DNA from: Oopsacas minuta
Lineage: Eukaryota; Animalia; Porifera
Direction of reading: 5' to 3'
Length of the DNA: 64,000 nt
Assembly (NCBI GenBank): GCA_024704765.1
Contig: JAKMXF010000343.1
Coordinates: forward strand, 310,001 to 374,000
The translations under genes and the position numbers were made by a program. Position 1 is the first letter of the stretch; each line of letters begins with the position of its first letter. The notes below the pieces were generated by a model. It was given only the letters and a program-made list of their open reading frames with translations, was not told where the DNA came from and did no database searches. Of the stretch, positions 30,894 through 54,380 are shown in pieces.

Positions 30894-33800
30894 TCACCAA
30901 TCTTTGAAAGGGTCAGTCTTGTCTGCATCACTAAATCCGCCATAACTGACATCATCCGATTTCAAACTGACATCTAATCCACTTTGTATTTCATCATTTG
31001 CTTTCGTGCTTGTATTCTCTTCCTCTTGTGTTTTAGAACTTTTAGTTAATAGTTGCATGTATGTAGCCATTGGATCTATAGCCACTTGTTCATTTGATTT
31101 CACTGGGCTATCGGAATGTTCTGGGATGTTGGTTGATTCTTGAGAAATAATATCATCCGATTTTGCAGATAATTGGGTAGAATTAGGATTTGCAACAGCA
31201 CTAGGCTCCAATTCTTCTATGGGATTTGCAGGCGTTCCCACTTGTTGTAGTATAGGATTAGACATAGTGGGAATAATGGGAGTATTTATTAAATCTGTTT
31301 TTGGTTTAGCTGGTGTGTCCATTAGTAGCGGTGTATCCATTCGAAAAATCTCAGATTGGGGAATTATTTTTTTATCGAACTCATTAACAGTTTCTGCGGG
31401 TGTTTTCACTTGTTCAGATGTAGGAATCTCTTTATGAAACTGATCCATTTCTGCCTGTACTTGTTCGAGTTGTTCTGCTCTTTCGACAGCTAGCCTCACA
31501 GCTTCATCTCTAGCTTTTGCTCGTGCAGATATTTCATTAGTTCGAGAGATGATATCCAATGCTAGATAGTCCTCCATAGGAATAGTATTGGCATCGGGAT
31601 TGTGTTTAACCTCTGAAGAAATAAATTCTATTCGTTTGCCCGTGTTCTGTGTAATGTCAGTAGATTGGCCTAGTGTTACTGTGGGATTTGCTCTTTCATT
31701 TGATTGATGTGTAGGTACATTATCTAAAGGCAAATTTGATTCAGCATGTATTGTGCTTGTAACATCAATTGTTTGTAAGGCATTCGATTGATTATTAATA
31801 GGAATGTTATCTCGAGCAGAATATGTTGGCTCATTACCTGTTGTATCCTGTAACCGATGGAATAGCCTGATTGGATCTATTGAGGTGCTAGCAGTCAAAT
31901 CAGGTGACATACTCTCAACTAAGGGAGGGTTATCATTTAGTTGATTTGTCTGTATAACAAGTGGACTTACAGATGTATCATTTTCGTTCAGAGATACCTC
32001 ATATATCTGATTCATTTCCTCTTTGCTGTCAGAGGATAAACTAATATGTGTTGGGTTAGATAACAACTGATTGTAAGAAGGCATTGAAGGGAAGTTATCC
32101 TGTGTTGTGTAAGAAGAAAATACGCCTGTAGATTTATTTCGCTCATCTAGAGGAGATATATTCACACCGGCTGTAAGATTTATATCCGTCAGACTAGTAA
32201 GAGAGAAAGAAGGCAATGATTTATCAGTAGGTATTTCAGTGGGCAATTTAAGTTCTTTTCTGGATTGGAATTGAATTTGTTGTAGGAATGCATTTGGGTC
32301 GAGCGTGCTTGCGTAAGGAAAATCTTGGAATATATCGGTAGATTTGTAATGTTTATCCATGGCTGTGCCTCTGAGTATTCTACTATGAACCTGTTTGTAA
32401 GAATGTTCCAATTCCAGAGCCTCCCGTTCTAATCTTTCTAAAGATGATTTTGCTTCCTGAACGAAACTCACATCACTCCCAGCCAATGAAATATCACCAG
32501 TGTCATTGAAGGCAGTTTCCGTTATATTGTTAGTTGGCAGTTTGATACGAACCCTACTCAATTTCGGTTTGTTTAAGAGATCGGGTTGGTCCTTCGTATG
32601 TGTGAATAAGGGCGGTGCAGAGTGTAATGTTTGATTTCTAAGAGATGATTTGATTGGATGAGAATCGAAATGAGTTTCTCTAGTTCTTGTGCTATTAGCA
32701 GTCCGTACTCTAAGATCGGATAGCTCATGGTTAAGCTGCTTAACCAACATCTGATGATCCCTTAAGGTCTCTTTCAAGCATCTTTGTTGATAAACAGCTG
32801 TTTCAAGCTGTGATTGTAACTGTTTATTCTCTTGTTGTTGAAGGATTTGTTCTCTTTTATGGCTGTGTTTCTCACTGACAAGCTTGTTATGTAACTCACG
32901 TACATCTTCTGATGGTTCTTGAAGTTTAGATCTGAGTTCTGAAATAAGTATCTCGTACTCTCTCAATCTTTCATCTTTAATTGCTTGATTCTTGCCAACA
33001 TCAAGTTTAGTCATGTACAGTTCATTTTCAAGTCTTACAGTCTCACTTTTCAACACATTATAATCACCCATTCTTTCTAGATTTTCGCTCAAAATGGATT
33101 TGTCTTTCTCGGCTAAAAGTTGTGCCTCTGTAGAGACATATACAGCTTCTTGTAGCTTAAATAGCTGGGATCTGAGATCAGTAGTTTCTTTGATTTGGTG
33201 TGAACATATTCCTTCGAGCTGAGACAAGCTGCGTTTCTCCTCCTTCAACGTAGCTTCTTGTAGTTCTAGATATTTGAGTTTATCTTGATATTCCTTCTCT
33301 AAACGAACTTGTTTTGCTGATAAAGCGTGTTGATTTGTAATTTCATTCTGTTTATTCGTATTTTCTAAGTTCAATTCTCTAAGTTTGAGATTTTGTTCCA
33401 AACACATCAATCTTTCCCTCTCTCCCTTCACTCCCCTATCTTCTGCTTCTAGAATCCTCCTCGCTTCTAATTCGCGGTTTTTAACACTCTCAAGTTCATC
33501 TAAAATCTTCTGTCTCTGAGAAAATAGAGTAGCATCTAACTCAGTTTCACGTTTCTTCATGCCCTCCATCATATTTCTTTCCCTCTGTTGTAACCCTTTA
33601 AGTCTCTCTTGATAGAACATTTCAGTTTGTCGGCGAGTTTTCGCAATTTCATCCTGCATTTTACTTTCGCATTCAAGCCTCATTGAAGCCAATTCTCTCT
33701 CTTTGAATCGATTCATTTCCGATTTGACCTGCTCATTAGCTCTTGTTTGGCATTGTCGTTGAAATGCTAACATTTTCTCCTGCATAGAGTAGTGACTATA

Positions 33801-34638
33801 TTCTCTCTCTCGCTCTGACAATTCTGAATATGCATGTTCTATTTCCATTAGTTTATCTTCTAAACAGTCTCTCTGTGTGTGGCTTTTGTGTGTTTGAGTG
33901 TGTATGTCTCTAGAAGAATACAGAAGTAAAATTATATTCAGAAAACAAACCATGGAAAATATTGTATACTTGAGCTTAACTGAATTTATGGTAGAACTAG
34001 TTCTTTCGACTAACAAAACTTCCACCTTGGTGGATAGATTAACAGGGTTGTAGTGTAGGGACTAGGAAGCCCGTAGGAAGTGGGTGGCCATTATTGGCAT
34101 GGAAATGAAAAGTGGGGCCTACCAACAGCCAAATCACTTCTATGGGCATTAAATTTATAAGTAACGAATTCGAATTCGAAGTTACATAATTAGATAAGTC
34201 GAATGATTAGGTATTTCTAAAAATCCTGAAATACCTCTTCTGTATCCCTCTATTCTTGGTCATTTCTTCAACTAGAAAAGTCAAAACAGAATATTTTCCT
34301 CTAAGATCTGCGCGCAGTATATCTTCTATCTCTCCTCTACCCATGATACCTTCCCTTCCACAACCCCCTTCAATAAATAAAATTGATAAGGTGTATTCTA
34401 GTCCTGTTATCTCAAGATATTCTGCTAATATGCTCACACACAAACGCCCCCATCTCTGCGTGGCTGACTCGCAACTAATAGGTCTGTCCCTAACCAAGGA
34501 CTGTAGTTCTTGCACGACCTTGCCTCGTAGCTGCGCTTTTATTGAGGACAATACTCCCCTCTCCTTCAATTCGGAGAATAAAGTAGATCTCACATCTTCT
34601 TGTGAACTCTCAGTCACTGATACAGGAGAATCAGACAT
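30894..34638 (-). CDS. OFD1: Centriolar/ciliary protein OFD1; exons 34638-34235 and 33909-30894
   Basis: LFSELKERGVLSSIKAQLR and LisH-like LCVSILAEYLEITGLEYTLSIL; EKMLAFQRQC..EMNRFKERELASMRLE coiled coil; C-terminal IDPMATYMQLL. Phase-2 intron 33910-34234. Confidence 0.85.
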
Positions 34639-34678
34639 AAGCTATAAGTTTATGACAAAATTTCAATTGGAAATTGTG

Positions 34679-35434: not shown

Positions 35435-35644
35435 AGCATGAACACTAAAAATACCAATACCCAGGTTGCTGTTGTAAATATGAAGAATTTGTCAGAGAAA
35501 GATGGAAATGATAGCTGCAGTTGGCTTGGAAAACCCAACATATAGATAGCAAGTAGGCATTTTCGTGAGTTGTTGTTTTCAGCTTGTAACTAATAGTGTA
35601 TCCAGCTGAGCAAATCAAACAAGTACATATATTATTCGTAGGTT

Positions 35645-36333: not shown

Positions 36334-36432
36334 GAAAGCAATCTCCAAAACTTTCACCTACGAAAGCAATCTCCAAAACTTTTGTCCATGAAAGCAATCT
36401 CCAACTCGTCTCAAAGACAGCTATATATAAGC
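36334..36432 (+). promoter_or_regulatory. Three 28-bp-period repeats followed by a TATA-like box upstream of the CTL-Ig receptor
   Basis: GAAAGCAATCTCCAA at 36334, 36362 and 36390; TATATAA near 36425; ATG at 36501. Confidence 0.45.
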
Positions 36433-36500: not shown

Positions 36501-39500
36501 ATGAAGTATATTTATTTCATTTTATCGCTATTGGTGCTTCAGTTGCATACACTAGTCTACTCACAAGGTAAGTAGATTGTGTTCATTACATAGATAATTA
36601 ATATACGGTAGAACTGGGATAAGACGTACTCCCTCGGGAAACTGACATTTGTATGTACTAACCGTAGTAGCCTCTTATTCAAATATTATTCCTATACAAT
36701 TAATACAAGAAATATATAATCATTTTTGGAGAAAGCCAACAACAAAATTGCTAATTGAACATACTAAATAATGCAAAATCTGATTTGGGAACTGAAAACA
36801 GGTTGTTGCTACTTGACAAATAAACGCTATTATTATTCAGAGCATTAATCTACCGTGTTCCATCTAAGAAACAGGACCGGAGGCCATCACCGGAGCACGC
36901 TCATATTTAATTGCAAACGATTTCCAATTTTATCGATATCCTACATAAAATTCAATATTGTTGCTGGGCCAATTTTCATAATCCACATTAAAATACGGAT
37001 TAGTTACAACTGGCTTGACATTACGCATTTTCTCTAATATATACTTTGCATTGATCCAATTCCATACTGATTATCTTGAATACAAATCCAATGTTATTGT
37101 AACTCTGGAGGATGAAAAGGAGTGCCCTCCATTTTTCTCGAGCAGGAGTGCGCTCCAAAAATGAGGAACGCAAAATCCTCTGCTATTATCAGATTTGCTT
37201 ATAAGCGCACTCTACTCTACACATATACTTAAACATACAAACTCGCGTTATAACTGAGTGATTCTTTACCCCCTGTAGCTTAAAAGTAATTGTTAATACT
37301 CCGCTCACAACGAAATGAAACCGTGATCCTAAACAATTGATTATAATGAGAGTTTACTGTAGTTATATTCTTACTATTGACATTTATCCAATGTATTGTA
37401 GCACCCACAACTGGTTGTGATGCAATAACAAGTGAAGGGACATGTTTCAGTTATTTTACAAGCTCTGGTCTTAATCAGGTGGATTCTAGACAACAGTGTC
37501 TTTCAAGTGGTTACGACTTAGCTACAATAACATCACTTGAAGATATGACACTACTGTATAGCACAAGTACAGGTTCAATAGATTGTTGGATAGGACTCAA
37601 TGATATAGACATTGAAGGGACATTTGTTTGGATAGATGGTAGTGATAGCACATATAGGAATTTTGCTAATGGTCAGCCTAATGGTGGACCAGGTGAAAAC
37701 TGTGTATTCCCAAGTCAGGGGAATTCAGGGCGCTGGATTGATATTCAATGTAGTGGAATAGTGACCTGCTACTTCTGTAGCACCAGTGGTAAGTGATTAG
37801 AATATAGTAGTTAGAATATAGGAATATGTCCAATTTTTTGAAGAGTCACAGTCGTAACCAGTTTTTTCAGCTATTTCTTTACAGGAAAATGTAACTAGAA
37901 TAAACGATAGTGATAATATACTGATGCAAATATATGTAAATCCCACATGCTGAGCAAGAAATATTGATAGAAAAATTTGATAGTAAGATAATACTAGTTT
38001 CTTTTTGAGAATTTAAGAACAGTACCATACATTTTACATTTTATCCTTTAGTGAACGCCTTTGGAGAAGTTATTGCATCAACAGCCTCACCCTTATCAGA
38101 CAATGCAATTATAACATCAGACACTACTCTCTACTGTATTACAGAGAATATGAACACACCAGAAGTGATGTGGAGTTATGTAGATCTATCTGGTATCAGA
38201 ACTGATCTCACTTCTACAACTGATCCTAATACAGGAGTTAGTACTATACAAGTGTACACTATTCAACCAGGATACTACAGCTGTAACGTTACAGAGAATG
38301 GAGGGATGAGCAGAACTTATACAGCTAATATACAAAATACTAATTTAAATGCAGGTAGATTATATTTCTCCTATCAGTGTTTTCCTGGCTGTTTTGGCGT
38401 ATCGCGCCTAACGCCTTAAACAGAGGCATTTATCATACAAGTAATATCAGGAATTATTCTACCATTGTGCTCCATTAATCTACTCTTAGATACTTCTCGT
38501 TGCTTTTAGTGTAGTTCCTATAGGAAGATGCCCTAATGGCATGGACGATGTGTTTCTTCCGTCAGTCCACACGGACGTACTGAATCTAGCTACCCAATTA
38601 ACAATTGATATACATATACATTCTGGGGTGTAGATTTGCAACGAGGGCTATGAATTTTTCTAAATTGTATTTTTGCATGCACATATAAATAATAGAATCC
38701 ATGTGCATTTTGAAATTACTTTATCTGTAAACCTAATTAAAATGATCATTTTCATTGACATTTATCCAATGTATTGTAGCACCTACAACTGGTTGTGATG
38801 CAATATCAAGTGAAGGGACATGTTTCAGTTATTTCTCGTTGGCAAATCCCGGTATTATCTTTGAAGATTCTAGACAGCAGTGTATTTCAAGAGGATATGA
38901 CCTAGCTACAATATCATCACCTGAAGAGAATGCATTGCTCGCTACTATAATTACCGTCACATCTGATTGTTGGATAGGACTCAATGATATAGACATTGAA
39001 GGGACATTTATTTGGGCAGATGGTAGTAATGATACATACAGGAATTTTAATGGCGGTGAGCCCAATGGGGGAACCAATGAAAACTGTGGACAATACAGAA
39101 CAGGGGGAGGATGGAATGATGCGCCATGCGGTGCACTACTTTGCTACTTTTGCGGCGTTGATGGTAAGTAACTAGTGACATTTTTATCGAATCATAGAAA
39201 TGTGCAAAATTGCTTGATTAATAAGAAAATTATCAATTTTTGCGAGTTATTAATTTATACAATATCTTGATACGATTTTTGAATTTAACAAAATATCTTT
39301 TAGTGGAAGTATTTGGAGAAGTACTTGCTTCAACATTTTCACCATTATCAGACAATACAATTCTAACATCAAATACTACTCTCTACTGTGTTACAGAGAA
39401 TATGAACACACCAGAAGTGATGTGGAGTTATGTAGATCTATCTGGTATCAGAACTGATCTCACTACTACAACTATAACTGACCCTAATACGGGAATCAGT

Positions 39501-42500
39501 ACTCTACTTGTATTCACTACTCAACCTGGATTCTACAGCTGTAACGTTACAGAGAATGGAGGGATGAGTAGAACCTATACAGCTGTAACATTTGACTCAA
39601 ATCCAAATACAGGTAAATTGCATTACTTTTACAATAGACTCTCGGTAATACCAGAGGACCTCCAATATTGGTACTATTTATCTGGCTATCTCGATCAGAT
39701 TTTGATTTCTATGAGTGCTCGAGTTACATCATGTTGACTGAATTTGCTTCGTATTTTTATGAGATTTTACCAAATATATGTACGTATACAGGATATGACC
39801 AATAATTTGATCCCTCATGTTATAAATATGTATTGTAGTGCCTACAACCGGTTGTGATACAATATCAACTGAAGGGACATGTTTCAGTTATTGGACAGGT
39901 TCTGGTATTAGCTGGGAAGAATCTAGATTACAGTGTCTTTCAAGAGGCTACGACCTAGCTACAATATCATCAGCTGAAGAGAATTCATTGCTCCTAACTA
40001 CAATTACAGGCTCAAATCGTTGTTGGATAGGACTCAATGATATAGACAATGAAATGGCATTTGTTTGGGTAGATGGCAGTGATAGTACGTATAGGAATTT
40101 TGCTAGTGGAGAGCCTAACAATCTAAACGATGAAGACTGTGTGCAATTTCAAGATGGGGTCTGGGCTGATACCCTATGCATATCAGTGGATTGCTACTTC
40201 TGCGGCACTGATGGTAAGTACTGTGTGAATTTATTGAATGACGGAAATCTGAAATATCGGTATTCACGAATGATGCTAAGATAAATCCTATTTTGAATTT
40301 AACCGATTACGACCGAAGTGATACGTTCGTAATGAAAAAGAACACTAAAATTTTACCACTTAGTTTGAACCAATTCCCACCTTCTAACATCGGTAAATTA
40401 CACATTCTCCCGGTCATATTCGGTTAACAATCTATTTCTTTAGTGAATGTATTCGGAGAAATAATAGCATCAACATACTCACCATTATCAGACAATGCAA
40501 TTATAACATCAGACACTACTCTCTACTGTATTACAGAGAATATGAACACACCAGAAGTGATGTGGAGTTATGTAGATCTATCTGGTATCAGAACTGATCT
40601 CACTTCTACAACTGATCCTAATACAGGAGTTAGTACTATACAAGTGTACACTACTCAGCCAGGATACTACAGCTGTAACGTTACAGAGAATGGAGGGACA
40701 AGTAGCACTTATACAGCTCTAATACCTGATACTGACCCAAATACAGGTAATTAGATTGCTTATGATACAGTACACTATGTGACTTTCATTTTACTTACCA
40801 CTCACATGCTTTCTTTGTATTGTAGTGCCTACAAGTGGATGTGATGCAATATCAAGTGATGGGAGATGTATTAATTATTTTACAGGCTCACTGGGCTGGG
40901 AAGATTCTAGACTACAATGTGTTTCAAGTGGTTACGACCTAGTTACAATATCATCAAGTGAACAGAATAACTTGTTGTTTAGCATAAATACTAGCTCAAT
41001 AGAATGTTGGATAGGACTGAGGGAGACAGACATTAACGGGAGATTTACTTGGGCAGATGGTACTGTTAACAATTTCAGGAGATTTGATACTGGTCAGCCC
41101 AATGGTGGACCTCCTGAACAATGTGTACATACTACGAATATCTTAGACACTTGGAATGATACACCATGTACAAACATATTGCCTTGCTACTTCTGTGGTA
41201 CTAAATGTAAGTGTTCTTGAAATTTGAATGATTCTATAGTCAGAAATTTGGAGTATGTAGTCCAAATTGTAAGACTTGTTTAAGGAATAATTGCCAATAT
41301 TTGATGTACGTGAGACGTTTATATTATATATATTGCTTGTTATCTTTAGTGGACGTATTCGGAGAAGTAATAGCATCAACATACTCAGCATTATCAGACA
41401 ATACAATTATAACATCAGACACTACTCTCTACTGTATTACAGAGAATATGAACACACCAGAAGTGATGTGGAGTTATGTAGATCTATCTGGTATCAGAAC
41501 TGATCTCACTTCTACAACTGATCCTAATACAGGAATTAGTACTATACAAGTGTACACTACTCAGCCTGGATCATATAGCTGTGAAGTTACAGAGAGTGGA
41601 GGGATGAATAGGACCTATACAGCTGTAATACCTGATACTGACCCAACTACAGGTAGAGTACATTGTTCGTAATTTTGAATCTTTGCGACTATATTAGACT
41701 CATACTCACCATTCACATGCTTTCTTTGTATTGTAGTGCCTACAAGTGGATGTGATGCAATATCAAGTGATGGGACATGTATCAATTATTTCACAGGCTC
41801 ACTCGACTGGGAAGATTCTAGACTACAATGTGTTTCAAGTGGTTACGACCTAGTTACAATATCATCAAGTGAACAGAATAACTTGTTGTTTAGCATAAAT
41901 ACTAGCTCAATAGAATGTTGGATAGGACTGAGGGAGACAGACATTAACGGGAGATTTACTTGGGCAGATGGTACTGTTAACAATTTCAGGAGATTTGATA
42001 CTGGTCAGCCCAATGGTGGACCTCCTGAACAGTGTGTACATACTACGAATATCTTAGACACTTGGAATGACACACCATGTACAGACATATTGCCTTGCTA
42101 CTTCTGTGGTACTAAATGTAAGTGTTTTTGTAATTTGAATAATTCTATGGTCAGAAATTTGGAATATGTAGCCTGAATTGTAAGACTTGTTTAAGGAATA
42201 ATTGCCAATATTTTGATGTACGTGAGACGTTTGTATTATATATTCTTCTTTAGTGAACGTATTCGGAGAAGTAATAGCATCAACATACTCACCATTATCA
42301 GACAATGCAATTATAACATCAGACACTACTCTCTACTGTATTACAGAGAATATGAACACACCAGAAGTGATGTGGAGTTATGCAGATCTATCTGGTATCA
42401 GAACTGATCTCACTTCTACAACTGATCCTAATACAGGAATTAGTACTATACAAGTGTACACTACTCAGCCTGGATCATATAGCTGTGAAGTTACAGAGAG

Positions 42501-45500
42501 TGGAGGGATGAATAGGACCTATACAGCTGTAATACCTGATACTGACCCAACTACAGGTAGAGTACATTGTTCGTAATTTTGAATCTTTGCGACTATATTA
42601 GACTCATACTCACCATTCACATGCTTTCTTTGTATTGTAGTGCCTACAAGTGGATGTGATGCAATATCAAGTGATGGGACATGTATCAATTATTTCACAG
42701 GCTCACTCGACTGGGAAGATTCTAGACTACAATGTGTTTCAAGTGGTTACGACCTAGTTACAATATCATCAAGTGAACAGAATAACTTGTTGTTTAGCAT
42801 AAATACTAGCTCAATAGAATGTTGGATAGGACTGAGGGAGACAGACATTAACGGGAGATTTACTTGGGCAGATGGTACTGTTAACAATTTCAGGAGATTT
42901 GATACTGGTCAGCCCAATGGTGGACCTCCTGAACAATGTGTACATACTACGAATATCTTAGACACTTGGAATGATACACCATGTACAAACATATTGCCTT
43001 GCTACTTCTGTGGTACTAAATGTAAGTGTTCTTGAAATTTGAATGATTCTATAGTCAGAAATTTGGAGTATGTAGTCCAAATTGTAAGACTTGTTTAAGG
43101 AATAATTGCCAATATTTTGATGTACGTGAGACGTTTATATTATATATTCTTCTTTAGTGACGTATTCGGAGAAGTAATAGCATCAACATACTCAGCATTA
43201 TCAGACAATACAATTATAACATCAGACACTACTCTCTACTGTATTACAGAGAATATGAACACACCAGAAGTGATGTGGAGTTATGAGATCTATCTGGTAT
43301 CAGAACTGATCTCACTTCACAACTGATCCTAATACAGGAATTATGTAGATCTATCTGGTATCAGAACTGATCTCACTTCTACAACTGATCCTAATACAGG
43401 AATTAGTACTATACAAGTGTACACTACTCAACCTGGATACTACAGCTGTGAAGTTACAGAGAGTGGAGGGATTAACAGAACCTATACAGCTGTAATACCT
43501 GATACTAATCCAATAACAGGTAGATTGCTCATCATGATATGTTAACCACGATTCGGGTACTACTTGTATGGTCGTAAATCTGTTGTCAGATAGTTGACGA
43601 AATTTTTCTCAGACTTAAGAACATACTGCTAAATGTATTATATTACATTGACATGCTAAATTCGTAGCTAGCATACCGACTGTGCATAGTAAAGGACTCA
43701 ATATTTAATGGACCACTCTTGTGCTGTATTATTATTTCTCATTGAAATTCAGTTAGCTTTTAGGAAACTTTTGAATCGTATAATGCGGGCAGAGGGTGCA
43801 ATAAGCATGAACTTACAACCTGAGTCAATAGCATAGTATATTTGTTGACTATTAATAGTGACTCTATTGTAGCAATATACATTGATAAATTCAACGAGAT
43901 TACATTTAGTGCCTCAAATCACTAAAGCTACTTATTAATGCGTAATTAAAGTAAATACATACTGTACTTCACTGTCGGCATACTTTTGTAATTTTGTAGT
44001 ACCTATAAGAGGATGTGATGCAGTATCAGATGAAGGAACATGCTTCAGTCATTTCACAAGATCTGGTCTTAACCAGGAGGATTCTAGAGTACAATGTGTT
44101 ACAATGGGCTACGATCTAGCTACAGTATCATCAGCTGAAGAGAATACTCTGCTGTATAGCACAAGTACAGGCTCTATTAATTGTTGGATAGGACTCAATG
44201 ACATAGACAATGAAGGGACATTTGTTTGGGTAGATGGTAGTGATAGCACATATAGGAATTTTGGTGATAGTGAGCCCAATGGTGGGACAGGTGAAAATTG
44301 TGTACGTCCAGATCAGGGGAGATCAGGAGGCTGGATTGATGTTCAATGTATCGCATTACTGAATTGCTACTTCTGTGGTAGCAATGGTAAGTGGTTATTG
44401 AAATTTGAATTTTCCAAGTCAGAATTTAGGAAATGATCACAACTTTAAGGTATCATCATTTTATTTATTTAGTGAATGTATTCGGAGAAATAATAGCATC
44501 AACATACTCACCATTATCAGACAATACAATTCTAACATCAGACACTACTCTCTACTGTATTACAGAGAATATGAACACACCAGAAGTGATGTGGAGTTAT
44601 GTAGATCTATCTGGTATCAGAACTGATCTCACTTCTACAACTGATCCTAATACAGGAGTTAGTACTATACAAGTGTACACTATTCAACCAGGATACTACA
44701 GTTGTGAAGTCACTCAGAATGGAGGGATGAATAGAACCTATACAGCTGGGATACTCAGCCCTGATTTGTATACAGGTAGGTTACGTTTGATTTCTTATAA
44801 TGAAACGAAGTACATATCATCCAATATTTGAGTGATTTACTTTATCTCTTGTATTTTATAGAAGCTGTAAATGGAAACAACTACAGTTACACGATTGGTG
44901 TGGATATTGAGGAGATCTATCTCATTTACATACCTGCTGATAACTCAATTCAGCTTACAGATATTCACTGGAGGAGGGAAGATCTACCTGGAGTCTTGTT
45001 CCCCAATCCAGTTAATATATACTCTCTAGCATATTATATTGGAAATGGAGAGTTTGTCACTCTACAATGCTACGATAAGAAATCTGGAATAAACTTTGTT
45101 AGTGTTGGACTCTTCGTTTATGGTTTGTTTAATCCTTAAAATTTTGGTTCATATAATATCTTCGAAGCGTTTGTTGCAATCCTTAATTTTTTAACTACTC
45201 CAATAGGTCCCCCTGTAATTATGCTGGGAGTCGAAAGAACCTTCTTTCTATTACCTCCTGATATTAACGAAGTTAATTTTACTGTACAATCATTGGATAT
45301 TGTCCTGAGCACAAATCTGGCAGGCCTTTGGCAGTGGCCAAATGGTAGCTCCACAGAAAGATATCTCATTTTCCAAACTTTCGAACAGTCTGATGAAGGA
45401 CTGTACATGTTCTATGTTATTGATTGGGATGGAGCAGACACATTGGCTATTCAGATAAACATTAGTGCTGTTGGTAAGAAATCTATAGCTTTAATTTCAT

Positions 45501-46430
45501 TCATACAATATATCCTCGCTAACCGAACAGCACTGTTCTAATTTAATACTTCATAAACGGGTTAATGTTTAATGCATTGAAACAATACTATAGGATCTAA
45601 GAACATATGTTTTCGAAAGTTGCACAAAGGATGGAAATGCTTCCAAAATTCTTCCTTGATCTGCTTAGAAATTTCATTGTTGGAAGCTTTAGTCATACTT
45701 TGCTGTTATATAAATTTTTGTATGTCATTAATCAACTTTTGTATATTTTCTAGAATCTACACAAAGCATTACAACATTAAGAACAGAAAGTTTAGGTGAA
45801 AATTCGATACTTGTTTTTTGGGGATTGTTTGAAACAAGTTCGGATTATTCAGGCATTTCATTTTCAATTTATTTGGGAGATGGAGCTAATGAATCTCTTG
45901 TTGGTACAACTACACTTTTGCACTATGAAATAACTGGTTTAACTCCAAATGTAAATTACACAATACAAATAGAATTTCAGATTCCAAACTCTTTACAAAT
46001 CATTTCAATCACAACTTATCATTATCTCGAACCAATTGAAATAGTTACTCCATCAGAAAGCATTACAACCGAACAAACAGTTTCCAATACAAATGACATC
46101 ACAAGTAATCCTACTGGTACTCCTACGAGTAGCGGTATAATTGATGTGTTGAATACACAGCCAGTTGCTCATTTTTCATCTTATCTCATCCTAGTCGGAA
46201 TAATTATCGTTATAGCACTATTAGTATTCTTGTGCATTTTAATAATAGCAGTGGTTACTTGGTACATTTTGAAGAAACATCGTGTGAAGAAAAATGATCT
46301 TTACGTAAACGCATACGCTACCACTAAAGCTACCAATACCCAGGTTGCTGCTATAAATATGAAGAATTTGTCAGAGAAAGATGCTACAGTTGACTTGGAA
46401 AACCAAACCAATACATATAGCACGACCTAA
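36501..46430 (+). CDS. Type I membrane receptor: signal peptide, 7x(C-type lectin + Ig-like), two further Ig-like exons, FN3, TM, cytoplasmic tail. Exons 36501-36567; CTL 37402-37788, 38780-39163, 39839-40213, 40826-41206, 41737-42117, 42641-43021, 44000-44386; Ig 38052-38354, 39304-39612, 40444-40746, 41350-41652, 42254-42556, 43158-43519 (disrupted), 44473-44775; 44862-45122; 45207-45473; 45754-46430
   Basis: MKYIYFILSLLVLQLH signal exon; CTLD motifs WIGL, WxDG, EPN/QPN, WND/WID/WAD; Ig motifs LYC..EVMWSY..GYYSC; FN3 SILVFW..GLTPNVNY; TM YLILVGIIIVIALLVFLCILIIAVVTWY. All introns phase 1. Confidence 0.85.
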
Positions 46431-47932
46431 CAACTAAGCCTTTTAATGAGTGTGTTTTTAGCATGATTGCATATTTAGCTCAACAGCTAGACAGCAAAAT
46501 AAGGATGAAATTGCATGGATTTTCTTAGTTAGTGTATTAGCCTGGTTTGTAGATTTATACATATCTTTTGGTATTTGTAGTTTAAATATGAACCAAATAC
46601 ATTTTTGTTTGCTTTGTGATAATGTTTGTGTTTTGAGTGATTTTATGTTTGTGTGATATTTTTGATTAAATATGCATCTTTGAAGTAACTTTTACAATAC
46701 AATATACTGCTAGCCACAACGACTTTTGAGAGACAATGATGCATTGACCAACACGTTAAACTATTGTATCTACTCAACCATACATATATAATGCAATATC
46801 GCATAAATTATAATAATTATACTGAGGCGTCCAAATGTATCTTTTCATGCAATAAATCATGCTTTGAAATCGTGTTTCATAGGCTGTTTCATTCGTACCA
46901 CGTATTTGGATACTTTATGCTGTAATTAGGCGACTATATATTTGGAAATTAGGCTTCCTATGTCACCTAACTGTGTCAAAGCCCAAAACGTCATATTTGT
47001 CTCAGTTTAGTCGCTTGGATTTATGATACTATGACAGGAGGGTCAGGCGACATCAGATACTAAATAGTCTAGGGTGAAACGTCCTGGGGCACGCTGACAC
47101 TTGTATGGGCAATCCCAGGGGAACAGGGGGCCGGCCCCCTTTTGACAAGTGATATAGCAAAGCTTTAATAACAAAACTCCATTATTAATGCGTTGACATT
47201 TAATTTCTGTAATTCTTGAATTCTGGATCCACTCTTCCCTGGGACCGCCCCTGGAATTGGACAACGGACAACTAACTTTACTTATTGCGTAATGTTATTG
47301 CTTGTTTCCTATCTGTACCTAGTTACTTGTGAATGTTATTGGCATTCACTAATCCATTGTGATATACTTGCATCTAAATAGGTAGAAAATATTTAGTGTG
47401 TTGTCTGATGAAGTGAAGCTAACTAGCAAACGTTTGTAGGATTAGCTCGTATAGTATACTAGGTCAACCTGACCAATTTAATTTTTCCGCCTATGCAGCC
47501 TCCTGAATTTCAGCTAATATATAATTAGGCGTATGGTAAAAGAAAATGCAATTTCGGGCGTGAAACCCTGGCGGTCACCAAGGAATTATTTAGGAGCACG
47601 AATTTTCAAACATTTAGCGATATCCGTGGTATCATGTCATAGCATAACTTTGTTGATTTAGGCGTACAAAAAATAACCCAGATCAATAATAGGAGCGCGT
47701 ACTGAAAGTCTGTATAATGCCCTGGTGGTCACCTACCTAAAACGATCACTGTTTAATAGAGTTTATGAATGGGGGGGGGCGGGGGCGGGCAAACTGGGCT
47801 TTAGCTCCAGGTGAATATTTTCTGCACCAAGCTGATCTGGCAGATCCGGTGATCGCTCCAGTTTATATCTTTATAACTGCTAGCAGATCAAGCAAGAATC
47901 TAAAATTATTTCTGATAACCTATAGCATTTAC

Positions 47933-50374
47933 ATGTCCAACTATACAACTTCTACTTCAAGTGGAGCAGATTGCAGCACTGTAACAACGACATACAAAGA
48001 TGAACAAGTTCTAATAATATTCTTATCTTCATTAGTTTTCGGTATATTCCTCTTCGTTATTTTCTTCATTCTACGTTTCATATTATGGGAGTTCGGTAAG
48101 CAGAATGTTTACAAATGGGGAAAAAATAAACAAACAGAGGAATATTCTGAAAATGACTCAGTAATTGCCGAGGATCTAACAACGGAATTGGAAGTAGCGC
48201 GGGAACATTCCTGCTTCAATTGGGTGAAAAACTATGTTAAATTTGGTCTACGTGGATTTCGTAAACGCGTGGGTGTGGATGCCTATCTCTACCATTTATT
48301 TCTACTGCATTTAGTCGTGCTAATGTGCTGCTATGTATTCGTATGTATTGTAGTGGTACTCACAGTAAATAAAGTGTATTGTAGTAAGAATCTAGTGAGC
48401 ACGAGTCTAATCACGCATACGTCAATATCGGCTTGTATCGCAGACTGTTCAGGGGAGCAATCATCAGCTGATATCATATGGCTACATTCCACAATGGCAC
48501 ATTTGTTGGTATTTATCGGCCTTATAATTGCATTAAACTACAGACGTATTCTATACCGTTACGAGCATAAAAGTAGATTTCAATTCAATGCTATACAAGT
48601 GCGAAACCTACCACGACCTCATAGTCAAGCTGAGGCTGATGATATCAAGAAATCTCTATGCAAACATTTCAGTGAAACGGAAGACGATGGTGAATCACCC
48701 ATTACAATTGACTTCGCTTATGACGTGGCTAAATACCATTCACTACGAACTAAGTATAATGATGCAGAGAAGAATCTACTTACATATGAAGGGCTAGATG
48801 GTCAGTATGGAGTGAAACAGTATATTTATCCGAGATTCGGGAAATTACTTGGCTGGGGTGAACCTGTATTAGCGACTGATTATTTCCGAGCTCAAAGCCA
48901 CGAACTCGCAAAAGAAATGCAAATTGAAAAGGAGAAGGCAATTGAATCACCGCAAAGTTTGGCTTTTATCGGATTCCCTGAAGGATTCGATGCCTTTTCA
49001 GTTTCCACAAAATATATTTTACTCTGTGGTCGTCCTAGATCATCACAATCTGTCTATCTTAAACAGAACCTTTGGCAAGTAAGACGTGCTCCTGCTCCAT
49101 CAGATATAAACTGGCATAACATCCGTACATCATGGTTCCGTATAGCAATCTGGTATATACGATGGTGTATAATAAATTTGTTCGTATTAATCCTATTACT
49201 TTTCTTTACAACTCCTGCGTCTGTATTCTCTATCCTTGATATAATACTTCGTTCAACCGGTGCTACAGGCAATACCACACATATCGATAACAATAAAGAA
49301 TCTGTTAACTTTATCATTGACTATGTACTGACACATATTGGGTTAGGCAATAGTACTGCATTCGACGCAGCAAGGTCTCTAGCATTAGCGTACGCGGCTC
49401 CATTACTACAGATATTAGTTGCTTCTATCATCCCGCTTATGGTGGCGTATGCTTCTTTCCTTGAATTCCATTGGACCAAATCTGATACCATGAAAGCTGC
49501 TATCTTGAAAACATATTCGTTTCTATTATTGATGCTTTTGATTTTCCCTTCGTTCACTCTGGTTAGTTTCAATCTCGTATTTGACCTCATCATAAAAGAA
49601 AGTACTAAAAATAGCTCTATTAGTCAGTTCACGAATTTAACTCTAATCGCATTCTCCCCAGACACTGGCATATTCTTCCTGAACTATTTGAATATTTCTT
49701 CATTCTTCGTTTTAATACAATTATTCCAAATTCCATCTCTTCTAATGTATCTCTATAGAAAGTTAAGTGCTCGTAACGAGGCTGAATCTTTACGTTCTCA
49801 TGAGAGCTATACGTACTATTTCAAGTTTGGTATTGAGTATGCCTGGGTTTTGGTTAAAATAACAATTGCGATTGTTTACGGGACTCTTTTTCCAATTATC
49901 ACGCTAAGCGGACTGTTATACTTGATAATGAAGATGGCTGTTGACCGCTATAACCTAATTTACCAAGCAAGATCACCACCAGAGTTTTCCGGACGTATTT
50001 CAGTGCATTTAAGAGCTCTCCGTTTTCTGCACGCATCCCTAGTCCTATCACAAATCTACATGTTGATCCTCTCCATTATTTTATACGGATACAGTCTCAC
50101 CAGGTCAGGCCTGCTAGCATTTAACGCTGCTATGCTGATATTAACTATCCTAGTTCTACTGGGTGTACAAGGCATTAGATGGTTCCAAAAGTATATTCAT
50201 GATTTCCGCATTAGCCTACGGACATTATTCACTCATTCACATGATATTCATCTCATGCGAGGACAAAGTAGTATATTCCAGCAATCTGGTAGGCACGCAC
50301 ACGCGTTTAGCTACTTTGATATTATAAACGATGCTACAAGTGATACTGATTCTCAAGATGCTCGAGTAGTGTAA
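47933..50374 (+). CDS. TMEM63: CSC1/OSCA/TMEM63 mechanosensitive channel, intronless; likely start MSNYTT at 47933 (track ORF begins 47765)
   Basis: GVDAYLYHLF, WQVRRAPAPSDINWHNI, LLLFFTTPAS, YFKFGIEYAW, YLIMKMAVDRYNL; about 11 hydrophobic segments. Confidence 0.88.
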   Translation: MSNYTTSTSSGADCSTVTTTYKDEQVLIIFLSSLVFGIFLFVIFFILRFILWEFGKQNVYKWGKNKQTEEYSENDSVIAEDLTTELEVAREHSCFNWVKNYVKFGLRGFRKRVGVDAYLYHLFLLHLVVLMCCYVFVCIVVVLTVNKVYCSKNLVSTSLITHTSISACIADCSGEQSSADIIWLHSTMAHLLVFIGLIIALNYRRILYRYEHKSRFQFNAIQVRNLPRPHSQAEADDIKKSLCKHFSETEDDGESPITIDFAYDVAKYHSLRTKYNDAEKNLLTYEGLDGQYGVKQYIYPRFGKLLGWGEPVLATDYFRAQSHELAKEMQIEKEKAIESPQSLAFIGFPEGFDAFSVSTKYILLCGRPRSSQSVYLKQNLWQVRRAPAPSDINWHNIRTSWFRIAIWYIRWCIINLFVLILLLFFTTPASVFSILDIILRSTGATGNTTHIDNNKESVNFIIDYVLTHIGLGNSTAFDAARSLALAYAAPLLQILVASIIPLMVAYASFLEFHWTKSDTMKAAILKTYSFLLLMLLIFPSFTLVSFNLVFDLIIKESTKNSSISQFTNLTLIAFSPDTGIFFLNYLNISSFFVLIQLFQIPSLLMYLYRKLSARNEAESLRSHESYTYYFKFGIEYAWVLVKITIAIVYGTLFPIITLSGLLYLIMKMAVDRYNLIYQARSPPEFSGRISVHLRALRFLHASLVLSQIYMLILSIILYGYSLTRSGLLAFNAAMLILTILVLLGVQGIRWFQKYIHDFRISLRTLFTHSHDIHLMRGQSSIFQQSGRHAHAFSYFDIINDATSDTDSQDARVV

Positions 50375-53240: not shown

Positions 53241-54380
53241 ATGGGTCTAAGTCTATCAGAGCCGATAACAACAAAGACGACAGATGCTCAGGAGAATGAA
53301 CAGTACAAAGTAGGTGTATCGTGTATGCAGGGATGGAGAATTGAAATGGAAGATGCTCACACTATTGAGATTGATTACATTGAAGATGATAAATCATGCT
53401 TTCTCGCGGTTTTTGACGGCCACGGTGGTACAAAGGTTGCGAAATATTCCGCCTCGAATCTCTACAAAGTATTTCCAAATCTCGATACTTTCTCGAAAGG
53501 TGACTACCATGCCGCCCTGAAAAAGAGTTTTCTCGATACGGACGTGAACATGTTAGCAGATGACGACATGCGTGACGATTCATCTGGAGCTACAGCTGTC
53601 GTTGTATATATCAAGAATAACAAATTATACTGCGCTAATGCTGGCGATAGCCGCGCGATTCTAAGCAAAAGTGGCACTGTATTTGAGCTATCACATGATC
53701 ATAAGCCTAATAACACAACTGAGCATCAGAGAATCAATAAAGCAGGAGGATATGTCGAATTTAACCGTGTGAACGGGAACCTCGCGCTTTCTCGAGCCCT
53801 TGGTGACTTCACGTATAAACATAATGATGCATTGGTGGCTGAGGAACAAATCGTTACAGCTGATCCAGATATCATTGAGAAGGAGCTCTCTTCTGATGAT
53901 GAGTTCATTGTACTAGCCTGTGATGGGATATGGGATTGTATGACAAATGAAGAAGTGTTAGATTTCGTGCGTACGCGTCTAGCTGAGGGGATACAGCCTC
54001 ATGTTATCTGTGAGAAGATAATGGATTTCTGTCTAGCTCCAGAAGTTAAGCCGGGTGGTGTAGGCTGTGATAACATGTCCGTTATTATCACCTGTTTATT
54101 GAATGGGAAAACATTCGAAGAATTTTGTGCAAAACTCTCATCTTCATCAAATATCAATTTGGATAAAGAACAGACTGAGCCGGTTAATCACACCGCAGAG
54201 AACCAGGTAGAAAACGGCGAAGAGACACCAAGTACGTCACAAACGGAGGAGAAAGAGGAATTGAAAGATCTTACATTCATTCCGCATAAATCACCGATAG
54301 ATATAGCCGATGAACTCTCCTCTCCCGTAACAGTCGTAAAAGAAGCAGAAATTCAGAGTTTACTAAATGGAAATTTGTAA
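53241..54380 (+). CDS. PP2C/PPM phosphatase of the Ptc2/ppm-2-like type, N-terminal Met-Gly, intronless
   Basis: MGLSLSEPIT, SCMQGWRIEMEDAH, VFDGHGG, ANAGDSRA, RVNGNLALSRALGDF, LACDGIWD, GCDNMS. Confidence 0.92.
   Translation: MGLSLSEPITTKTTDAQENEQYKVGVSCMQGWRIEMEDAHTIEIDYIEDDKSCFLAVFDGHGGTKVAKYSASNLYKVFPNLDTFSKGDYHAALKKSFLDTDVNMLADDDMRDDSSGATAVVVYIKNNKLYCANAGDSRAILSKSGTVFELSHDHKPNNTTEHQRINKAGGYVEFNRVNGNLALSRALGDFTYKHNDALVAEEQIVTADPDIIEKELSSDDEFIVLACDGIWDCMTNEEVLDFVRTRLAEGIQPHVICEKIMDFCLAPEVKPGGVGCDNMSVIITCLLNGKTFEEFCAKLSSSSNINLDKEQTEPVNHTAENQVENGEETPSTSQTEEKEELKDLTFIPHKSPIDIADELSSPVTVVKEAEIQSLLNGNL

Follow-up and report, generated by a model that had tools for sequence, protein, structure and literature searches.

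An alternating C-type lectin/immunoglobulin-like exon array in an expressed gene of the glass sponge Oopsacas minuta, member of a large family and possible multivalent glycan receptor

Molluscan CREPs are secreted proteins with one or two immunoglobulin (Ig) domains at the N-terminus and one lectin domain at the C-terminus. In sponges, C-type lectins are said by one survey to be few (PMC10140915), and the only glass-sponge lectin that has been characterised is a small protein of Aphrocallistes vastus, which binds galactose in the presence of Ca2+ and has been proposed as an aggregation factor (PMC4557014). Glass sponges do not have the aggregation-factor genes of demosponges but are nevertheless able to tell self from non-self (PMC5400394). 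Here we describe a gene of the glass sponge Oopsacas minuta, carried on the + strand of a 64,000-nucleotide stretch of contig JAKMXF010000343.1 (positions 310,001 to 374,000; this stretch is called the window, and exon coordinates are positions within it), in which seven C-type lectin exons alternate with seven Ig-like exons. The gene is transcribed and, judged by its sequence, belongs to a large glass-sponge family with the layout signal peptide, (lectin-Ig)n, X1, X2, FN3/transmembrane exon, where X1 and X2 are two further exons discussed below. We hold with moderate confidence that it encodes a multivalent, Ca2+-dependent, glycan-binding type I receptor of the cell surface.

An initial annotation, made from the letters alone, had read the locus as a signal peptide followed by seven lectin-Ig pairs and a membrane-anchored stalk, and had considered this architecture distinct from that of molluscan CREPs and FREPs. 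Both statements stand. The signal peptide, the seven alternating lectin and Ig exons, and the membrane span are all present, and no paper describing receptors with alternating lectin and Ig domains was found in the literature on glass sponges, C-type lectins, and immunoglobulins. The word "lectin" does not occur in the genome papers of O. minuta and A. vastus. The domains themselves are well known; it is their arrangement that is new.

Three-frame translation and a scan for splice sites place 18 exons of a single gene on the + strand between positions 36400 and 46600, beginning with a signal-peptide exon, continuing with the seven lectin exons that alternate with seven Ig-like exons, and ending with X1, X2, and a last exon. 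The introns are short (79-834 nt), and all 17 of 17 are in phase 1 with GT-AG boundaries. All searches reported here were run exon by exon, not with the joined spliced protein. The exons, preceded by two features upstream of the start codon, are the following:

35444-35506, + strand: tail relic, 1 kb 5' of the start codon; tblastn match of 81% over 21 residues to the gene's own tail
36423-36431, + strand: candidate TATA-like element, read from the sequence, about 70 bp 5' of the start codon
36501-36567, + strand: exon 1, signal peptide; ATG at 36501, 22 residues with a hydrophobic core, phase-1 GT donor placed after the first base of a codon
37402-37788, + strand: C-type lectin exon 1, QPN/WID, 387 nt, phase 1-1; Pfam Lectin_C E 4.3e-11
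38052-38354, + strand: Ig-like exon 1, 303 nt, phase 1-1; sub-threshold matches to Pfam Ig_3, ig, and I-set
38780-39163, + strand: C-type lectin exon 2, EPN/WND, 384 nt; Pfam Lectin_C E 3.2e-17
39304-39612, + strand: Ig-like exon 2, 309 nt; from splice sites and translation
39839-40213, + strand: C-type lectin exon 3, EPN/WAD, 375 nt; Pfam Lectin_C E 5.1e-17
40444-40746, + strand: Ig-like exon 3, 303 nt; query of the search of representative proteins
40826-41206, + strand: C-type lectin exon 4, QPN/WND, 381 nt; Pfam Lectin_C E 3.3e-15; first of three near-identical units
41350-41652, + strand: Ig-like exon 4, 303 nt
41737-42117, + strand: C-type lectin exon 5, QPN/WND, 381 nt
42254-42556, + strand: Ig-like exon 5, 303 nt
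42641-43021, + strand: C-type lectin exon 6, QPN/WND, 381 nt
43158-43519, + strand: Ig-like exon 6, 362 nt, broken as assembled; from DNA alignment with Ig-like exons 4, 5, and 7
44000-44386, + strand: C-type lectin exon 7, EPN/WID, 387 nt; Pfam Lectin_C E 5.1e-14; RNA joints on both sides
44473-44775, + strand: Ig-like exon 7, 303 nt; RNA joints
44862-45122, + strand: exon X1, beta-sandwich, probably Ig-like; RNA joints
45207-45473, + strand: exon X2, cysteine-free domain, Ig-like by its modelled fold; RNA joints
45754-46430, + strand: last exon, FN3-like domain, Ser/Thr-rich stalk, predicted membrane span, 45-residue tail; stop codon at 46428-46430

The relic at 35444-35506 probably remains from an event in which the 3' end of the gene was partly duplicated.

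Every internal exon is entered and left in phase 1, and in all but Ig-like exon 6 the length is divisible by 3. The claim that each domain corresponds to one symmetric phase-1 exon is therefore right for most domains but needs two corrections: Ig-like exon 6, at 362 nt, has an in-frame stop, and the FN3-like domain lies in one exon with the membrane span and the tail. Symmetric phase-1 domain exons are the textbook rule for the extracellular modules of animal proteins, so the pattern of phases, taken alone, is unremarkable. Such exons allow domains to be skipped or duplicated in frame, and are no evidence that either occurs.

The identity of the lectin domains is clear. Exons 1, 2, 3, 4, and 7 match Pfam Lectin_C (PF00059) with 44-64 bits against a cut-off of 22.6 (E from 4e-11 to 3e-17), and exons 5 and 6 are 98-99% identical in nucleotide sequence to exon 4. 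All seven carry the N-terminal cysteine pair of the long form, the CWIGL motif, the cysteine of E-x-C, the cysteine that follows W-x-D, and a C-terminal CYFC. The sugar-site motifs initially annotated proved exact: QPN/WID in domain 1, EPN/WND in domain 2, EPN/WAD in domain 3, QPN/WND in domains 4-6, and EPN/WID in domain 7. With ligand positions set from Pfam and PDB alignments and the numbering of MBP-A, the five ligands of Ca2+ site 2 are complete in domains 2, 4, 5, and 6 (Q standing for E in domains 4-6), and it is these that are predicted from sequence to bind. Where WND has Asn, domains 1, 3, and 7 carry I, A, and I, respectively; they probably bind in another way, if they bind at all. 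Lectin exon 2 finds its nearest PDB matches among sugar-binding receptors, which are members of the mannose-receptor family as well as CD23, DC-SIGN, and collectins. Its EPN lies on the canonical EPN in these alignments. Across the seven domains, the most variable stretch is the loop between E-x-C and W-x-D, which lies beside the sugar site, and dN/dS amounts to 0.34-0.76 between old lectin exons as against 0.13-0.18 between recent copies.

The Ig-like exons are less easily recognised, since they miss the cut-offs of Pfam: Ig_3, ig, I-set, and Ig_2 score 12.5-18.2 bits, where 21.8-30 are required. A profile of the family, however, matches solved Ig domains in the PDB, among them those of NCAM2 (6.9e-7) and MuSK (6.9e-6) as well as those of titin, DSCAM, and hemolin, and the Cys-Trp-Cys core with its Y-x-C is kept, C28, W40, Y75, and C77 being invariant or nearly so in 22 aligned family sequences. 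Because the profile matches solved Ig domains and the core is kept, the exons can be accepted as members of the Ig superfamily, and by this sequence comparison all seven are genuine domains of an I-set-like kind. Within the gene (38052-44775), dS between Ig exons is 0.18-0.31, roughly one half of the value for the lectin exons in those units (0.38-0.76). The difference fits a homogenisation of the spacers, as by gene conversion, while the lectin heads diverge.

The gene has many relatives in its own genome, which as published comprises 365 scaffolds, about 61 Mb, with 36% G+C (PMC10280926). In these 61 Mb, there are at least 105 matches to the Ig-like exon type, at least 148 exon matches to Lectin_C, and 19 matches to the last exon. 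The number of lectin exons contrasts with the "few" C-type lectin genes attributed to sponges by the survey (PMC10140915). When exons were mapped on the best paralog regions, these were found to share the order signal peptide, (lectin-Ig)n, X1, X2, last exon:

C343:555-570 kb, - strand: paralog with 8 units
C343:583-592 kb, + strand: paralog with 3 units
C343:608-617 kb, - strand: paralog with 4 units
C343:618-620 kb, + strand: inverted partial copy, with Ig, X1, X2, and last exon only
C88, - strand: paralog with at least 1 unit; NCBI protein "Lactose-binding lectin l-2-like"

Identity to the paralogs at C343:555-570 kb, 583-592 kb, and 608-617 kb and on C88 is 81-86% in the signal peptide, 75-84% in the Ig exons, 61-64% in X1, 55-60% in X2, and 53-56% in the last exon. 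More distant members repeat Ig-X1-X2 or lectin-lectin-Ig-X1-X2, add an SRCR domain, or end in two tyrosine-phosphatase domains (among these members are the proteins P0040 and P0002). At NCBI the paralogs are annotated only automatically, some under names taken from the mannose-receptor family. A protein of 565 residues, P0004, was considered as the product of the present locus and rejected; it is that of the paralog on contig C88. Two stalk copies (Ig-X1-X2-last exon) lie in inverted orientation on C343, their last exons (608051-608512, - strand, and 620057-620518, + strand) encoding the same protein. The Ig exons of these copies (609950-610237, - strand, and 618333-618620, + strand) contain one in-frame TAA each, so broken Ig exons recur in the lectin/Ig family.

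Unit number evidently changes in this family. Units 4-6 of the present gene are a tandem triplication with a period of about 905 bp, and by direct alignment the copies are 94-97.5% identical, introns included. (Tandem Repeats Finder reported no repeat, but its longest period, 500, is shorter than the unit.) The unit-4 type of lectin exon matches, moreover, with 96% amino-acid identity, lectin exons in paralogs that lie at a distance of 200-260 kb. Given the recent triplication and this match, the number and content of units do change, by duplication and by exchange. The proposal that the receptor can be diversified by copy number is borne out to this extent: unit counts differ between paralogs, and three units of this gene are recent copies. 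Its extension to differences between individuals goes beyond what was seen.

Outside O. minuta the trail is short. A full HMMER comparison of one Ig exon with 1.84 billion representative proteins yielded no more than 109 hits at E <= 0.001. The long hits better than 1e-17 are all from O. minuta; from about 1e-9 down, those that are long belong to generic insect and vertebrate Ig proteins. The short hits are exon-sized open reading frames (ORFs) from ENA assemblies. One such assembly, ERZ25071281, contains a 577-kb contig whose DNA agrees with that of O. minuta at 86% at best, and in exons only, and which is therefore taken to represent a second species. This contig carries (lectin-Ig)x5 with a sixth lectin exon and, elsewhere, lectin-Ig-lectin followed by an exon homologous to the FN3/transmembrane exon. 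The arrays on contig ctg49532 of this assembly are:

L019:6439-16559: alternating lectin and Ig exons
L020:8618-20161: alternating lectin and Ig exons

From these comparisons of sequence, the family is older than O. minuta but appears confined to its relatives. Word-based protein searches found nothing for the last exon and, for lectin exon 1, only exon-sized ENA ORFs; the method sees only proteins of similar length, so that full-length relatives are invisible to it. A dispersed repeat at L001:7046-7450 is present in the second species and in more than 40 places of the O. minuta genome, with 70-84% identity.

The initial annotation had placed two Ig-like domains after unit 7, and this can be maintained for X2 by its fold but for X1 only as probable; neither exon was assigned to a Pfam family. 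The model of X1 (pLDDT 81) was compared exhaustively with known structures by VIA-align, giving Z values of 5-6, mostly with Ig-superfamily domains, while Foldseek gave no clear match. Distant paralogs of X1 have Cys...Trp...Cys where this gene has Tyr...Trp...Cys. As modelled, X1 is probably Ig-like. X2 is free of cysteine, and its model (pLDDT 83) is matched by Foldseek, with probability 1.0 and E from 1.5e-3, to Ig domains of NCAM, LINGO-1, LRRC4, and LAG3, so that on the strength of the model it is Ig-like by fold. Compared profile against profile, X1 and X2 showed no significant similarity. The profile of X2 (45209-45472 and its paralogs) also matches the Ig-like repeats of GhpA, the grappling-hook protein of Aureispira. 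The summed E-value is 2.3e-30, with no single stretch passing, and the identity by Foldseek is 20-27%; common descent and convergence are both compatible with the match.

The last exon begins with about 100 residues that resemble Pfam fn3 below threshold (E 7e-4, compared with 4e-4 in the second species and 7e-5 in a paralog). There follow a Ser/Thr-rich stretch, a hydrophobic span of 30 residues starting at about 46200 (mean hydropathy of its best 19-mer, 3.81), the basic sequence KKHRVKK, and a tail of 45 residues containing NDLYVNAY ... NTYSTT. This would place the lectin-Ig array outside the cell and the tail within. In the second species, the tail encoded by the FN3/transmembrane exon is internally duplicated, and each copy has tyrosine motifs of the YTNE and YEEI types.

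Four sequencing runs, all from one sample, contain the locus, and their reads were compared over positions 42560-46500. Runs X1 and X3 (labels unrelated to the exons) are DNA-like, covering introns continuously. Run X4 is RNA-like: it gives spliced contigs, and its depth is zero in the intron at 43616-43879. Its joints are those predicted (43519|44000, 44386|44473, 44775|44862, 45122|45207, and 45473|45754), and one contig of 1,550 nt joins Ig-like exon 7 to X1, X2, and the last exon, which it then follows unspliced from 45754 to past 46500. The spliced contigs show that the gene is expressed, and they verify the 3' half of the model. They offer nothing to the idea that the receptor is diversified by splicing: in run X4, the 3' half has one constitutive form from Ig-like exon 6 to the last exon, with no joint that skips an exon. 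A further run, X5 (2024, under another organism label), has over the same positions only pieces of lectin and Ig exons, at 95-99% identity, and has neither introns nor X1, X2, or last exon; it could be from a close relative or a sample of low depth.

How might such a receptor work? Its 17 domains could form a long rod, held by one membrane span and displaying at least four weak sugar sites, those with all five ligands being the EPN-type domain 2 and the QPN-type domains 4-6. The Ig domains would act as spacers between the lectin heads, so that avidity, as we propose, would come from many weak sites on one rod. With Ca2+, the rod might bind multivalently to glycans on particles, microbes, or neighbouring tissue. 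New units would be gained through tandem duplication of the lectin-plus-Ig cassette of about 905 bp and through exchange between paralogs, processes that could work because every exon of the cassette is in phase 1-1. As to biological role, one can only speculate, and immunity, the recognition of food or symbionts, and allorecognition may all be entertained.

Several observations weigh against such a glycan receptor, or at least against parts of it. The Asn of WND is missing from three of the seven lectin domains, and the QPN of three others, though known from arthropod lectins, is a motif whose specificity is not settled. The tail, aligned with those of five paralogs and of the second species, has lost the conserved motifs NPQL[FY], NETY, and LAYSPEKK; of the four motifs conserved in the family, it keeps only the C-terminal xYST. 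Because of these losses, its competence in signalling or endocytosis is doubtful. YVN, which the initial annotation took for a Grb2-type motif, is certainly present. It occurs, however, in 0 of the 5 O. minuta paralog tails, it falls in an insertion of eight residues found in this gene alone, and the YTNE of the second species does not align with it. Since YVN is peculiar to the gene and the conserved motifs are lost, Grb2 signalling finds no support. The reads that confirm splicing come from the sample that was assembled, and so are not independent of the assembly. Finally, Ig-like exon 6 as assembled ends the reading frame before the membrane anchor, and RNA contains the 3' end of that exon, joined to lectin exon 7.

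This last point deserves closer attention, because from it follows an alternative account of the gene. Relative to Ig-like exons 4, 5, and 7, exon 6 has lost its fourth base and has gained an imperfect tandem duplication of 60 bp (43284-43343). The two changes together give an exon of 362 nt in which, entered in phase 1, six codons are followed by a stop. If the lesion is real, then the gene might encode a secreted lectin that ends early, comprising the signal peptide, five lectin-Ig units, the sixth lectin domain, and six residues before the stop, or it might be a pseudogene, decaying but still transcribed. A membrane form would then come only from transcripts that skip exon 6, a step that keeps the frame. 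The joint that such transcripts would have, lectin exon 6 to lectin exon 7, is not listed among the RNA joints, whereas the contig that joins the 3' end of Ig-like exon 6 to lectin exon 7 has a depth like that of neighbouring contigs specific to the gene. The degeneration of the tail compared with the paralogs and the occurrence of an in-frame stop in two paralog Ig exons point the same way. So does the build of the exon, which is a mosaic: its 5' half, with the intron upstream, is 98.5% Ig4-like, its 3' half is of a different type, and the 60-bp duplication sits where one type switches to the other, as a recombination scar would.

On the other hand, the six exons 3' of the lesion are all open (6 of 6), correctly spliced, and in possession of their domain signatures. 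The lesion lies, moreover, inside a tandem repeat of 94-98% identity, in an assembly that was published as gap-filled, polished with Pilon, and built of short scaffolds, and errors are common in such places. In one RNA contig, the donor of a lectin exon is followed by an intact TGGACG start, which fits unit 4 as well as a correct unit 6. The contigs of run X4 are short in this region, and none is shown to cross the duplication. A true lesion and an assembly error cannot be told apart here. We nevertheless regard a secreted fragment or pseudogene as unlikely, and the membrane-bound glycan receptor as the better account.

Rather less probable, in our view, is that the gene serves mainly in cell-cell or tissue self-recognition and adhesion, filling in glass sponges the place that the aggregation factors have in demosponges. 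The ligands would then be the sponge's own glycans, or the Ig domains would bind homophilically, and the diversity of the family would serve allorecognition rather than the sensing of microbes or food. Glass sponges, which tell self from non-self with no aggregation-factor genes (PMC5400394), might use such a protein, and the galactose lectin of A. vastus, a putative factor of this kind, is a precedent (PMC4557014). The family has features that would suit it: it is large, clustered, and rapidly rearranged, its 61-Mb genome having no fewer than 105 Ig-type and 148 lectin exons, with a variable number of units, and its Ig exons are homogenised while its lectin exons diverge (dS 0.18-0.31 against 0.38-0.76). 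A receptor for foreign glycans would look no different by these measures, however, and the evidence separates neither role from the other. It is more doubtful still that the gene and its paralogs make up a recognition and aggregation system in which individuals differ in unit number, sugar-site loops, and exon content as a result of unequal crossing-over and gene conversion, broken exons being tolerated by in-frame skipping, and in which these differences decide the fusion or rejection of syncytial tissue.

Because glass sponges tell self from non-self without aggregation-factor genes, the members of this family are candidate genes for recognition, offering concrete material both for the self/non-self question and for the recognition of microbes and food by a syncytial filter feeder. 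The locus also catches the duplication of phase-1 cassettes in the act, perhaps with a dead exon inside a transcribed gene.

The neighbours of the gene in the window are unrelated to it: a long ORF for a coiled-coil protein at 30897-34641 (- strand), an ORF for a multi-pass membrane protein of 877 residues at 47741-50371 (+ strand), and an ORF at 53241-53999 (+ strand) that resembles, judged by eye only, a PP2C-type phosphatase.

Among known systems, the mannose-receptor family (MRC1, DEC-205/LY75, PLA2R, Endo180, and the yolk-sac IgY receptor) provides the best PDB sequence matches of the lectin exons, and it resembles the predicted protein in its type I orientation, in its many lectin domains per chain, only some of which keep the sugar site (here a predicted one), and in combining one membrane span with a short tail that bears tyrosine motifs. 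Unlike that family, no exon here has a Pfam match to a ricin-type or FNII domain, the lectin domains are never adjacent, the stalk is of the form Ig-Ig-FN3 (with X1 probably the first of the two), and the FxNxxY endocytic motif is absent. The A. vastus lectin, compared by its description, is likewise a C-type lectin of a glass sponge, with Ca2+-dependent binding of galactose (PMC4557014), but it is a single domain with a calculated mass of about 22 kDa (34 kDa when glycosylated), and has no Ig domain, FN3 domain, or C-terminal membrane span.

The CREPs and FREPs resemble this gene in combining Ig-superfamily and lectin domains, in forming a diversified multigene family, and in their proposed role in recognition. 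A chain of seven lectin domains that ends in a membrane span and tail does not fit the CREP plan, however, and the type of Ig domain found here retrieves no mollusc protein above generic Ig similarity. The closest likeness lies within O. minuta itself, whose other lectin/Ig cassette receptors are built from the same types of Ig-like, X1, X2, and FN3/transmembrane exons, with domains again carried on single phase-1 exons. Among these subfamilies, the present gene is set apart by its seven units, its short and divergent tail, and its freedom from any enzyme domain.

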